From Orbicella franksi (lineage: Eukaryota), in the NCBI GenBank assembly GCA_964199315.1, contig OZ116704.1, positions 3,224,001 to 3,288,000 of the forward strand: a stretch of 64,000 nucleotides of DNA. Direction: 5' to 3'. Under the pieces are notes generated by a model. That model was not told the origin of the DNA, did no database searches, and saw only the letters and a list, made by a program, of their open reading frames with translations. This document shows, piece after piece, positions 27,692 through 43,310 of this stretch (positions within the stretch are counted from its first letter, which is position 1; each line of letters opens with the position of its first letter). The translations under genes and the position numbers were made by a program.

Positions 27692-30377
27692 ATGGAAAAG
27701 AAAGAAAAGCAAAGCGGAGGTCAACTTCTACCTGTTTTACTTGTTTGTATGTTGTTAGCCTGCGCGGGTCTTGTGTTTGCTGTTTACACTCACAAAGAAC
27801 TCTGCTGGCTGAAAACCCAAATCCGTGAACATGAAAAACTCATTCAGACCTTACAACTCGGTAACAATGCTCGAGATATCCAGGTAAGAGGTTTCTTTTC
27901 CGGTTTGCACGCGGCTGTATTTTAGTGACAAGAGTTCGGTATTGCCACAGTCTAAAGAATTGTTTCTTTTTTAATGTGAGCTTTGTGTATGTTACAGGGG
28001 TCAGAGGAAGTGCGTATAAGTAGGAGCGCTCAAACTTCATGCACTTGCGTTGGTCAGTGGTCCTAATTTTTTGTATAGTAACAATTCCCTATTTTAAGAG
28101 AGAGTTTTCACGATGTCAATTAACAAATAGTCAGTCCCTAAGAGTGGATCTGCATCTCGTTCACTGGAACGTCTGTCTCCTGGGCTTACTTCTTCCCGGC
28201 ATAGTCAATCGAAAGTGGGAAATACAAGAAAGGCGTCCACACTTCTCACAATCCGAGAAAAGCTATTGTTGTCTGGCAAGTTACTGTTGTCTGGCAAACC
28301 TTGAGATAACAATCCTCATTATAATAATCAATCAACGATCACCCGATCACCCTAACCAAAAAGACGAATGCTTGTGCAGTTTCCGACACACTCCCCCATA
28401 TAGTTTCTATAAGAAAGCATAGACTATGTAAACGGAAACTCATGTCGCTTGAATCACAAATTCACAAAGCAGCGGTAATCGAGAGGCTTAATTGATTATT
28501 AATAGTTCTGCACAACCGTACTAGGTGCTTTGAAATTTCTACTTAAGTTCATGCTCATCAAACGATCGAATGACTACTGAGTTCAACAGTTCAGGTTCTA
28601 CATCTCCTTCTCCTGGAAAGCGTCTTGAATCTTCAAACCTGCAGCAACTGCGGCGACTCGTCTTGAACGGGAGGGTCGTGGCTCAGGGTTTAGACCTGAG
28701 GTATCCTGTAACTGTAACGCGTTGTGGCACGCTAGCTCTAATGGGAAAAGGTGTTGCACAGGCCTTTCAAGGAAAGACTTCCCTGCGCGAAGTCTCGCTG
28801 CTCGCACGATTCCGTCATGACCCTCGAACAGATCTACTAACACGCATAGCGACCGATTCCCACGATTTCTTTCATCTCCACGCACAATGACCACATCACC
28901 TACTTTCAGAGTGCTCGGCTTGCCGTGTTCTTTACAGTTATGGCATTCTCTGAGTGCGGATAAATACTCTCTAGACCAGCGTTTCCAGAATGCATCTTTA
29001 CAGGACTTCAGGTATTTTGCTCGTCTGCGAAGATCTACGTTCTCCTCTCTCCATGGCTCTTGTTCGGGGAGGCGAATGGATCTCTGAAACAAGAAGGAGG
29101 CCGGAGTGAGGAGCGGTAGCTGGACATCATCTTCAACGTAAGACAGCGGGCGACGGGTCAGCTGAGTTTCGACTTCGTGAAAAACTTCAGAGAGCTCGGT
29201 CCGGGAGAGCAGACCGCCTCCAATGGTCTTATTGAACGCTCGCTTGAAAAGACCACTCGGCCCCTCGAACTGGCCACCCCACCATGGTGCTCGACTCAAA
29301 CTGTAACTCCAGGCGATTCCTTCGTCAGATAAATAAGAATGGACTTTCTCGTCGCTCTGAATATGCTTTAACCACCTTGCTTCCTCGAACTCAATCGAAC
29401 CCAATCGAACTCAATCCGTGGATTGAGTTCGATTGAGTTCGATTGAGTTCGGCAGTCGAACTAAATCGAACACCGAACTTTGTGTGAATTCGATTTCCGA
29501 ACCAATCAAACTCAATCGAACAAATCGAACCGAAACAAACTCAATATATTGGATTGAGCTCGATTTAGTTCGATTGAGTTCGGTTGAGTTCGATTGAAAT
29601 ACAGTTCGATTGGGTTCGATTGGGTTCGATTGGGTTCGATTGGGTTCGATTGACTATGCCGGGCTTCTCATAACAATTGTCAACAAAAATCTACTGTAGC
29701 TTCCCACGCAGGCGCTTAATGGTGATGAGATTGCGTGACTTCTCCCACCGTGACCAGAGTCATTTTGTAATTTTGTTTCCGTTTTCCTCATCTTTGACAT
29801 CAAGGAGCCCCAGGGAGACCAGGTCAGAAGGGGAAGCCTGGAAAACCCGGTCATGTTGGCCCATCTGGCAATCCAGGTAAATGAAAGCTAAAGACATGAA
29901 GTGGACAGAATACTAGAAAATAGCAGGCGTCACTTGACTACAACAACCAGAATTCCTTTCGTTTTTACTTTTTAATATTTACATTTTGAAGCCCCAGTGG
30001 GGTTTAAAAAACAATCAGAGTAACAAGTACCTTAATTAACATGGAAAAGTGAAGGATTCTGGTAGTTGTAGTTAAATAAAGTCATCATGTAAATGGCCCG
30101 TAGGTATCGTAAAGTCTCAGCTATTGATGGTTTTTATGTTAAGTAGTCAATTTTCAAAATACAAAATTACCTATCCTTCTGAGGTTCATCAGGTAGAAGA
30201 CCCTCTAAGAACTTGACGTTTTACAACGTTTTAGCTCGACGGGGTCCTTCGTTTTGTAATACAGCACGTTTGAATTTCTAAGCTTTGGCTTTCCGTGACA
30301 TTAAATGGCGGCCAGAGAAGGCTGTCGCGCAGGTCAAAAGATGAGTAATCACTTACGTTTTTGCTAACTAGAAGTTC

Positions 30378-30411
<34 letters not shown>

Positions 30412-42400: not shown

Positions 42401-43310
42401 GATGTAAAATATCAAACACGGAAGACCGTGTTTGATATATTACATCTGAAGTGTTTGACCACATTTCCAAACACCGAGAAGAGAGTTAAAAAAACGACGC
42501 GCAGCGGAGTATTTTTGACGACCTTCGAGGTGTTTGGAAATGTGGTCAAACACTGTCTTGAGTGTTTGATATAACTTCTCAATGGAAACGAAAACTAAGG
42601 AGAAAACAGAGAAATTATATTGTAGAAAACTATGCTAATTAAGATCAGATATCTAAACACCGTCACGGTGATAACTTTCTTTGTCTAAACTTGATGAATT
42701 ATTAATGAGTTTGAGAGAGACATAGAAAGGACGTCACTGAGACCAGAAAAAAAAAAAAAAAAACGTAGACCAGTAGTTAGTAGTCAGCAGTGTTTTTCAT
42801 AAATATCTAAATTGATCTGGGGTTATGGCTGTGATCTCAGGACTTATCCCTAAGAGATTGCCGGAAGGGACAGGAAAAGGCCCTTTTCCAGAGTACACTG
42901 TATTCACACTTCACTCATCGAGGATTTGAACATCTGTTTTGTTAACAGTTAGTCATGTGATAACAAACTGGATCGTCCGTGACAAGATGGGCGCCATTAA
43001 ATACGACCAAGGTTTTATCATAGTCGGTAGAACCGGACACTACTTCATATACAGCCAAATGTACTATAACGACGCCCGCACACATTTAATGGCACACCAA
43101 ACTTACGTCAACAATGAAAGGGTTATGGAGAGTGTTGGAAGCGCTCTTAATGACAGCACAAAGGATAACACCAGATATCACGGTGGAGTTTTCCTTCTCC
43201 GCGTGAACGACACCATATCAGTTCGTATACCGTACCTCCGGCAGTACAACATGAAAAGTGATGCCAGCTTTTTCGGAACATTTTTATTGTACCCTGGTGA
43301 ATCGCCCTGA
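27692..43310 (+). CDS. Locus C: type II TM collagen-TNF ligand with two tandem TNF homology domains (432 aa predicted)
   Basis: Exons 27692-27883 (TM; 61/64 aa identical to B), 27998-28052 (RISR|S, CTC), collagen 29805-29876, 30978-31067, 31618-31643, strand A 31734-31773, THD 35698-36078, linker 40348-40376 (DETTTTSPAS), strand A 40934-40985 (VRQSIYLSGDD), THD 42949-43310 with TGA. Total 1299 nt in one continuous frame. Confidence 0.8.
28195..29663. mobile_element. TIR-bounded non-autonomous DNA element (AATCGAAC-repeat MITE) enclosing the BEL/Pao fragment
   Basis: 19-bp TIR CCCGGCATAGTCAATCGAA / TTCGATTGACTATGCCGGG; inverted arrays of (C/T)CAATCGAAC at 29385-29655; absent from the paralogous intron of B. 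Confidence 0.7.
28598..29385 (-). mobile_element. BEL/Pao retrotransposon integrase C-terminal fragment, followed by a probable PPT and LTR start
   Basis: APWWGGQFE, RPLSY, LLTPASFL, WKRWSREYLSALRE, GIVRAARL, RPVQHLFPLE are typical of the Pao integrase tail; on the minus strand AGGAGAAGGAGA|TGTAGAAC at about 28602. Confidence 0.85.
30377..30426. repeat. (AAC)n microsatellite
   Basis: Read directly. Confidence 0.9.
33370..33650. repeat. Tandem repeat, exact 100-bp period, about 2.8 copies
   Basis: Units start GCGCAAACATA at 33370, 33470 and 33570; copies 1 and 2 are nearly identical, copy 3 is more diverged. Confidence 0.9.
35698..36078 (+). CDS. First THD-body exon of locus C (internal)
   Basis: [33 protein letters not shown]|gtaaac; acceptor tctttgcag|. 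Confidence 0.9.
36221..38063. mobile_element. Decayed Academ(H)-like DNA transposon carrying a RecQ-type helicase remnant
   Basis: TIR TAGACTGTTCACAGCCC / GGGCTGTGAACAGTCTA; inner inverted repeats 36351-36385 / 37925-37959. Plus-strand LKDEQEEA..DVIAILPTGFEESLIYQ (36656-36691, degenerate motif I) and VVLIVSSL..MKEQ (motif Ia); a convergent minus-strand ORF fragment at 37600-37800. Confidence 0.55.
37011..37600. mobile_element. Tc1/mariner(pogo)-type MITE nested in the Academ-like element
   Basis: TA-C(G/A)GTCAAACCTG...CAGG(C)TTGACTG-TA termini; repeated ATTAAGCGGACACC motifs. Confidence 0.7.
38858..40300. mobile_element. Unclassified, truncated TE remnant with acidic ORF fragments
   Basis: G-run-rich terminal-type sequence at 38858-39010; acidic tails (DEELDDSEDEDE; SETDESDNDEYDSD...TRSGR). 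No second TIR or catalytic motif recognised. Confidence 0.3.
41001..41122. repeat. Compound hexanucleotide microsatellite (ATAATG)n(ACAGTG)n(ACAATG)n(ATAATG)n
   Basis: Read directly; starts about 15 nt after the donor of exon 40934-40985. Confidence 0.95.
42949..43310 (+). CDS. Second (terminal) THD-body exon of locus C
   Basis: [38 protein letters not shown]; acceptor gttaacag|. Confidence 0.88.

Follow-up and report, generated by a model that had tools for sequence, protein, structure and literature searches.

The window analyzed here is a 64,000-nucleotide stretch of the genome of the coral Orbicella franksi (contig OZ116704.1 of assembly GCA_964199315.1, positions 3,224,001 to 3,288,000 of the forward strand). 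It carries a tandem cluster of ectodysplasin-like genes, which combine a membrane anchor, collagen and a tumor necrosis factor (TNF) domain. Our reading of one member of the cluster, locus C, which as a whole we consider probable, is that it forms a single ten-exon gene encoding a type II, collagen-stalked and pre-clustered ligand with two different TNF homology domains (THDs) on each chain. The tandem architecture itself, in which a first domain (THD1) is joined in frame to a second (THD2), is confirmed as real at the RNA level and as conserved.

For many TNF receptors, only ligand that is membrane-bound or has been artificially hexamerized elicits a response, and this need for clustered ligand has led drug developers to build single-chain, hexavalent and bispecific agonists of the TNF superfamily (TNFSF). 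Locus C would be a natural counterpart of these engineered agonists, with three collagen-held chains each bearing two different TNF domains. Selection has maintained it in stony corals that are only distantly related, and it provides a model for the encoding of ligand valency and specificity. In corals the repertoires of TNF ligands and receptors have undergone great expansion, and both have been connected with apoptosis and heat stress. Counting genes on the assumption that each ligand has a single THD would miscount and misname coral TNF genes; the Stylophora pistillata orthologue of locus C already carries both the labels 'TNFSF10' and 'ectodysplasin-A-like'.

Gene structure and splicing of locus C

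The ten exons of the gene lie within 27692-43310 (Table 1) and sum to 1299 nt, equivalent to 432 codons and a stop, with AG/GT borders throughout. They rebuild exactly the continuous 432-residue frame, THD1-DETTTTSPAS-THD2, that had been put forward in a preliminary description of this DNA, and both THD exons are recognized as TNF homology domains by Pfam PF00229 (43 bits for THD1 and 51.2 bits for THD2, cut-off 23). From its N-terminus the encoded chain would comprise a cytoplasmic tail, a signal-anchor, a Cys-containing stalk, ~20 collagen triplets, THD1, a ~19-residue spacer and THD2. Read from the sequence only, its topology is type II, with an 11-residue charged tail followed by 21 uninterrupted hydrophobic residues and no further hydrophobic segment in the 432 aa. 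It departs from the ectodysplasin-like pattern of a single C-terminal THD in having two THDs in one frame, joined in RNA.

The first exon is co-linear with the N-terminus of the Stylophora protein PFX34031.1. The second exon, which is needed to reach 432 aa, matches GSEAVRIRKNAPDSCTCV of Stylophora; a 406-aa model with a phase-1 donor at 27860 was rejected once the Stylophora protein had revealed this additional stalk exon. The only candidate for a furin site in the stalk of locus C is the minimal RISR of exon 2, whereas the cluster paralogues carry strong sites (RDKR or RGRR) ahead of the collagen, as does EDA. Exons 3-5 supply ~20 uninterrupted G-x-y triplets between the anchor and THD1, forming a collagen stalk, and exon 4 scores 28.7 bits against PF01391 (cut-off 27.2). 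The RGD triplet of the stalk (31028-31036) lies in the context GIMGRRGDSGPP, and its exon is absent from the deposited Stylophora model. Homologues of exon 6 are present in loci A and B of the cluster and in the three comparison loci from other corals described below.

The splice borders surrounding the linker are all canonical: CAAG/GTAAAC at 36078, a pyrimidine tract and TAG before 40348, CG/GTAAGA after 40376, CCAG before 40934, C/GTGAGT after 40985 and AACAG before 42949. The linker reads ...FFGAFLLKDAEIQ-DETTTTSPAS-VRQSIYLSG..., so that the order after THD1 is KDAEIQ-DETTTTSPAS-VRQ followed by strand A2, THD2 and the stop, and the ~19-residue spacer between the two domains is rich in Thr, Ser and Pro. 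We also considered a read-through tail at 36079..36257 (+), with 59 codons to a stop, as the coding C-terminus of THD1. This candidate was rejected because it becomes a dispersed repeat from ~36220, which supplies the hydrophobic end of the open reading frame (ORF), and is not conserved; it is most likely intron. At the other end of the gene (43290-43310), the THD2 tail ...YPG/ESP holds a donor-like CCTG/GTGAAT in phase 1 just ahead of the stop, within a 'Y-P/S-G-E/D' motif conserved in most THD2 orthologues; splicing at this site was not seen on the contig L007 described next.

The preliminary description had named three junctions to be checked in RNA, and all three were recovered. Reads and contigs were aligned to 35500-41499; many of the RNA runs in which the stretch occurs are filed as 'coral metagenome'. 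The junction 36078>40348 (GT..AG, 4269 nt skipped) is present in one contig each from two different metatranscriptome studies (X1 and X5) and in two raw 150-nt polyA reads from a 2026 run of a further study (X40), and the junction 40376>40934 (GT..AG) has equal support, in one contig each of X1 and X5 and two reads of X40. A search of the Joint Genome Institute (JGI) metagenome collection with the 28-nt string spanning the microexon/strand-A2 junction returned one contig, Ga0100404_1192364 (L007, 6193 nt), which aligns to 35978-36078, 40348-40376, 40934-40985 and then 42949-48961 with exons 97-98% identical to the window. This contig carries all three junctions, including 40985>42949, and its frame is unbroken from the last THD1 strands through the linker and the whole of THD2 to the stop (...FFGAFLLKDAEIQDETTTTSPASVRQSIYLSGDDTNLRNPLSHVITKW...YPGESP). 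That two THDs share one translated mRNA frame is supported by the L007 ORF, by the junction reads and by the two TNF stretches of the Stylophora orthologue. A genome search allowing two mismatches gave no match to either junction string, so the joints do not come from a retrocopy or processed copy.

RNA depth is nil over 35500-35699 in both X5 and X40 and starts in the next bin, an onset at ~35700 that fits the acceptor at 35698. The THD2 exon is contained whole in 14 RNA runs, and the THD1 exon stretch is contained at 0.43-0.75. Among contigs encoding the proteins P0010 and P0125 we found only unspliced, genome-like ones, which are uninformative on the 5' joins, and contigs encoding the Stylophora proteins P0156 and P0002 are not on record. 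Likewise, a homologue search with single THD exons gave mostly ORFs of genomic contigs with intron-derived N-termini, which say nothing about splicing. In the translation of P0125, which was called from the contigs L012 and L013, TGA had been taken as Trp.

Conservation, age and relatives of the tandem layout

We compared locus C with loci from three other coral genomes (L008, L009 and L010), reached from THD2-type ORFs. In each of them a THD exon lies 1-6 kb upstream of THD2 on the same strand, and is followed by a conserved donor AAG/GTAA 7-10 codons past FFGAF; were this donor left unused in the three loci, a stop would come 2-8 codons on. All three also have a strand-A2 exon with intact acceptor and donor between the two THDs, and no anchor exon was found between THD1 and THD2 in any of them, the next anchor exon lying past THD2 in L008 and L009. 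For the linker microexon, candidates of 23 nt in L008 and 32 nt in L009 resemble the proven 29-nt microexon of the window in that all are 3n+2 in length and end S/GTAAGA. The spacer from FFGAFLL to the first THD2 strand is 17-22 residues in four species.

In a maximum-likelihood tree the five THD2 sequences (the window, L008-L010 and Stylophora) form one clade with support of 100/100. The ratio of non-synonymous to synonymous substitution rates (dN/dS) of THD2 is 0.13-0.20 at dS of 0.7-1.3, and 0.14-0.20 for exon 10 of locus C against its orthologues, indicating that THD2 is under purifying selection. The layout is, on this comparison, conserved across corals. The clade and the substitution ratios together point to an old lineage, which argues both against a recent duplication and against a decaying fragment. 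The preliminary description had seen in the tandem a duplication of the unit of microexon, strand-A exon and THD exon. This can hold only for the deep past, and not for a fresh copy, since THD1 and THD2 are 49% identical with saturated dS and their microexons are unrelated, one being a 26-nt collagen-like GPRGLPGSL and the other a 29-nt DETTTTSPAS.

The upstream partner of THD2 varies. In L009 the upstream THD groups with that of locus B (99/97), and the presence of a B-type THD1 ahead of THD2 implies that the partner was exchanged during coral evolution. The L009 gene (L009:2500-10440) has many collagen exons, and its B-type THD1 lies only ~1 kb upstream of THD2. No anchor or collagen exons belong to THD2 itself in the window, in the L008-L010 genomes or in the Stylophora model, so it would reach the cell surface only by splicing behind a complete upstream ligand gene. 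From these comparisons THD2 appears to be a TNF domain with no existence outside another ligand gene, in which it is the passenger or second head. We considered the string 'DTNLRN' at 26604 as a relic strand-A2 exon after locus B and rejected it as a chance match, since it has no exon context.

The closest known relatives are the proteins from Stylophora. A search with the THD1 ORF matched XP_022792743.1 ('ectodysplasin-A-like isoform X1'), which has two THDs and whose 90% cluster also holds XP_022792748.1 ('TNFSF10-like isoform X2') and PFX34031.1 (UniProt A0A2B4SVX8, 'TNF ligand superfamily member 10'), a protein of 378 aa with two Pfam TNF stretches. PFX34031.1 is co-linear with locus C from Met1 to its last residue, with an anchor and coiled-coil, a C-x-C stalk, collagen, THD1, a ~19-residue spacer, strand A2 and THD2. 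The Stylophora THD1 is, however, only 64-73% identical to that of the window, the THD1 partner differing between corals, and isoform X1 has an extra 18-residue collagen-like spacer exon that we sought without success in the intron 36079-40347 and in L008-L010. The Stylophora proteins are automatic gene models in GenBank, UniProt and RefSeq, and no papers citing their accessions were found in the searchable literature.

Ligands with several THDs within a single reading frame have been reported in a preprint (10.1101/2024.07.27.603686), whose accessible text names genes with 4-9 THDs in Hydra vulgaris, two in Crassostrea virginica (A0A8B8AD19) and three in Darwinula stevensoni. These examples resemble locus C in their shared frame but come from predicted proteomes and AlphaFold models, several having one membrane segment per THD; that text does not mention collagen or transcript evidence, and a coral gene is not among its named examples (10.1101/2024.07.27.603686). 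The preliminary description had suggested that the architecture was undescribed. We likewise found no paper that discusses the combination of collagen with two THDs, but the automatic Stylophora models and the multi-THD preprint precede the present analysis, and the architecture is not wholly new: it joins two known kinds of protein, the collagen-stalked TNF ligands and the multi-THD ligands.

Among solved structures, the relatives of the two THDs are APRIL/BAFF, FasL, EDA and TRAIL, and the best match of THD2 is 4ZCH, a single-chain APRIL/BAFF, in two stretches. EDA (EDA-A1/A2) resembles locus C in its type II membrane topology and in the collagen stalk that precedes its C-terminal THD, and differs in having one THD where locus C has two. 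EDA chains (1RJ8, 1RJ7 and 7X9G) are among the sequence-nearest structures (E-values 5e-8 to 2e-6), but this does not establish EDA orthology because APRIL/BAFF and FasL score equally well or better. The engineered ligands scTNF, scTRAIL, 4ZCH and the Duokines (PMC6140609) share with locus C the head-to-tail arrangement of THDs on short flexible linkers, made with the aim of higher valency or two specificities. They are man-made, however, with three THDs per chain and one chain forming one trimer, whereas the two natural THDs per chain of locus C would be trimerized by collagen.

In the TNFSF12-TNFSF13 read-through fusion TWE-PRIL, as in locus C, adjacent TNFSF genes are spliced together. The natural TWE-PRIL protein keeps only the THD of APRIL, and both parent genes are complete; THD2 of locus C, in contrast, does not have a separate gene. 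When 1.84 billion representatives were searched with THD2, vertebrate TWEAK-APRIL fusion models were the only ones among 124 relatives to match in two stretches. No tandem coral protein was found among these representatives, a result explained by their standing for clusters at 50% identity.

Assembly of the ligand and alternative readings

The collagen G-x-y stalk, together with the C-x-C knot, would trimerize three chains, so that six THDs would be displayed per molecule. That a collagen stalk can hold three chains in register is known from EDA and from C1q-like and collagenous TNF/C1q proteins. The core residues GxYxxYSQ, YHGGVFxL and FFGxF are invariant in both domains and across the paralogues; these shared trimer-core residues and the 17-22-residue spacer suggest that the six domains most likely form two trimeric heads. 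As the trimer core is invariant in both domains, homotrimers and mixed trimers would both be possible, and the heads might be either (THD1)3 with (THD2)3 or two mixed trimers that place THD1 and THD2 of one chain next to each other. The product would be a pre-clustered agonist, probably of two specificities, for the coral's expanded set of TNF receptors; at just 49% identity the two domains likely have different receptor preferences, and it is reasonable to infer a hexavalent or bispecific ligand.

When Stylophora XP_022792743.1 was submitted to complex prediction in three copies, it scored 0.36, against 0.00 for the best of 3 controls, with at least 37% contact agreement among runs and a partner pLDDT (predicted local distance difference test) of at least 66; the mark for this score was reached by 21 of the 30 proteins solved as one-chain pairs and by none of the 23 solved as single chains. 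In the confident predicted contacts, THD2 of one copy touches THD1 as well as THD2 of another, a weak hint of a mixed head in which the two domains of one chain are neighbors, rather than of two clean homotrimers. A stronger version, in which THD1 and THD2 form obligate mixed heads and the third THD comes from another chain or from a locus B THD spliced ahead, strikes us as unlikely, if worth stating: corals would then have a natural single-chain-like heteromeric TNF ligand with composite receptor-binding grooves, and could address their much enlarged set of TNF receptors combinatorially.

Several points weigh against our reading of locus C. The junction support is thin, amounting to one contig per run and two raw reads, and X5 and L007 may come from one JGI project. 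L007:183-6193, L012 and L013 are unspliced, extending from the exon of THD2 across the intergenic sequence and into locus D, so that the libraries contain genomic DNA, pre-mRNA or long read-through RNA and isoform shares cannot be derived from them. The upstream joins 27883>27998>29805>30978>31618>31734>35698 appear sound on phase, splice signals and the Stylophora model, not on same-species reads, and the tandem form is known at the level of RNA and genome, not of protein. The complex score, for its part, may reflect the predictor's familiarity with TNF trimers, which are well represented among solved structures; strand A of THD1 was missing from the input, and the prediction as modeled does not discriminate between homotrimers and mixed trimers.

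The two THDs could instead be alternative 3' cassettes, the anchor and collagen exons splicing either to THD1 or directly to THD2 (31067>40348), with the tandem form a minor by-product. Both the 31067 donor and the 40348 acceptor are indeed in phase 1, so the skip would keep the frame and give a product of ~283 aa with exon 2 (257 aa without it). We nevertheless regard this as improbable: over the region to which reads were aligned, every record showing the sequence ahead of the microexon (contigs of X1 and X5, reads of X40, and L007) joins it to 36078, the donor directly past THD1 is conserved in four genomes, and the Stylophora models contain both THDs.

Equally improbable, in our estimation, is a chain longer than the one proposed, in which the locus B THD exon splices into the phase-1 collagen exons of C to give three THDs (B, C1 and C2) and a natural single-chain trimer. 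The B donor CCAG/GTAAACAGATG is identical over 12 nt to that of C1, with a stop six codons on, and both the B-type THD directly ahead of THD2 in L009 (99/97) and the predicted grouping of one chain's THD1 and THD2 with a THD of another chain are in keeping with such a product. Locus C, however, begins with a start codon and an anchor exon that are conserved with Met1 of Stylophora, and ~6.8 kb together with the first exon of C separates the B donor from the first phase-1 acceptor. The shared donor may also be no more than recent copying of the ends of B into C, the anchor exons of the two loci being 92% identical.

We think it very unlikely that the joined RNA is a functionless read-through chimera of two genes, comparable to TWE-PRIL, with THD2 as a separate gene or a decaying fragment. 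The cluster did arise through tandem duplication, the unspliced contigs L012 and L013 begin inside the intron ahead of the THD2 exon, and vertebrate TWEAK-APRIL fusions were the sole two-stretch matches among the representatives searched. Yet THD2 has been kept at the low dN/dS given above over dS up to 1.3, it lacks an anchor, signal or collagen exon of its own in four genomes and the Stylophora model, the linker microexon varies in length yet preserves the frame, and the strand-A2 exon and its splice sites are conserved. A domain that is conserved and has no gene of its own makes accidental read-through an unlikely source of the tandem. Finally, although L007 is a hybrid, spliced at its 5' end and then co-linear with 6 kb of genome, and although Logan contigs can be chimeric, an artefact of mis-assembled metatranscriptome contigs or of another organism can be dismissed almost entirely, as identical GT..AG joints occur in raw 150-nt polyA reads of the independent 2026 run, precisely at canonical sites with the frame kept, and the exons are 97-98% identical to the window.

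The surrounding cluster

The assembly (497 Mb, 805 contigs) contains 31 THD-like exons in a genome-wide Pfam TNF search, and 9 of the 31 are in a single same-strand cluster around the window. Seven of the THD exons are within the window itself, where collagen exons are numerous besides the anchor and THD exons (Table 1). The anchor exon of locus C is 92% identical to that of locus B (8376-8603).

Table 1. Exons of locus C and other features of the cluster, in window coordinates
Feature	Position	Strand	Description
Locus C exon 1	27692..27883	+	Start codon, tail MEKKEKQSGGQ, hydrophobic signal-anchor LLPVLLVCMLLACAGLVFAVY, short coiled-coil-like stretch; phase-0 donor CAG/GTAAGA
Locus C exon 2	27998..28052	+	Stalk GSEEVRISRSAQTSCTCV(G); C-x-C pair just ahead of collagen; minimal RxxR motif (RISR)
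Locus C exon 3	29805..29876	+	Basic collagen triplets GAPGRPGQKGKPGKPGHVGPSGNP, phase 1-1
Locus C exon 4	30978..31067	+	Collagen triplets including RGD (31028-31036); Pfam PF01391
Locus C exon 5	31618..31643	+	26-nt collagen-like microexon (G)PRGLPGSL; AG/GT borders, phase fits
Locus C exon 6	31734..31773	+	Strand A of THD1 (SRESIHLVGNGQK)
Locus C exon 7	35698..36078	+	THD1 body; ends at phase-1 donor CAAG/GTAAACAG, nine codons past FFGAF
Locus C exon 8	40348..40376	+	29-nt linker microexon (D)ETTTTSPAS
Locus C exon 9	40934..40985	+	Strand A of THD2 (VRQSIYLSGDDTNLRNP)
Locus C exon 10	42949..43310	+	THD2 body and stop codon (…FFGTFLLYPGESP, then stop)
Peptide stretch of tandem chain			...LLKDAEIQDETTTTSPASVR...
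THD exon A1	4201-4545
THD exon A2	5771-6106
THD exon B	22666-23004
THD exon C1	35715-36071		THD1
THD exon C2	42951-43307		THD2
THD exon D	47223-47552
THD exon E	54729-55073
Signal-anchor exon B	8376
Signal-anchor exon C	27692
Signal-anchor exon D	~46250
Signal-anchor exon E	48821

The THD exon of locus B ends ...GGPGTPG/KQMKKN before its stop (23020-23050), with the collagen-like GGPGTPG just ahead of a 12-nt donor string, GGTAAACAGATG, as found in C1; this donor may be a relic of an ancestral tandem of B and THD2, as in L009, or a live donor. A1 (4201-4545) and C1 (35715-36059) are 74% identical (dS 0.27, dN/dS 0.62), and C1 is much nearer to A1 than to its positional counterpart in L008 (dS 0.93), a pattern compatible with gene conversion. 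A2 (5771-6106) lies 1.2 kb behind A1, and anchor, collagen and strand-A exons were looked for between the two and not found; A2 is another 'passenger' THD, on a long tree branch (0.83).

The introns of locus C have also acquired repetitive sequence. Intron 2 contains a 268-aa ORF (28598-29404, minus strand) with Pfam DUF5641, which is typical of retroelement polyproteins. An older dispersed repeat at 36220-36700 (at least 40 copies, 75-93% identical) begins 140 nt past the THD1 donor, and its presence from ~36220 confounds RNA depth just past that donor. Further along the THD1-THD2 intron, 38850-39970 is a young multi-copy transposon with inverted ends and at least 40 genomic copies that are 91-99% identical; the copy here lacks ~460 nt present in others, and ORFs on both of its strands gave no Pfam match. 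Its RNA depth far exceeds that elsewhere in the stretch, and loose ends are numerous at 39576, 39588 and 39967. The corresponding depth peak at 38700-40100 was considered as an intronic gene of locus C and rejected, its source being the multi-copy transposon.

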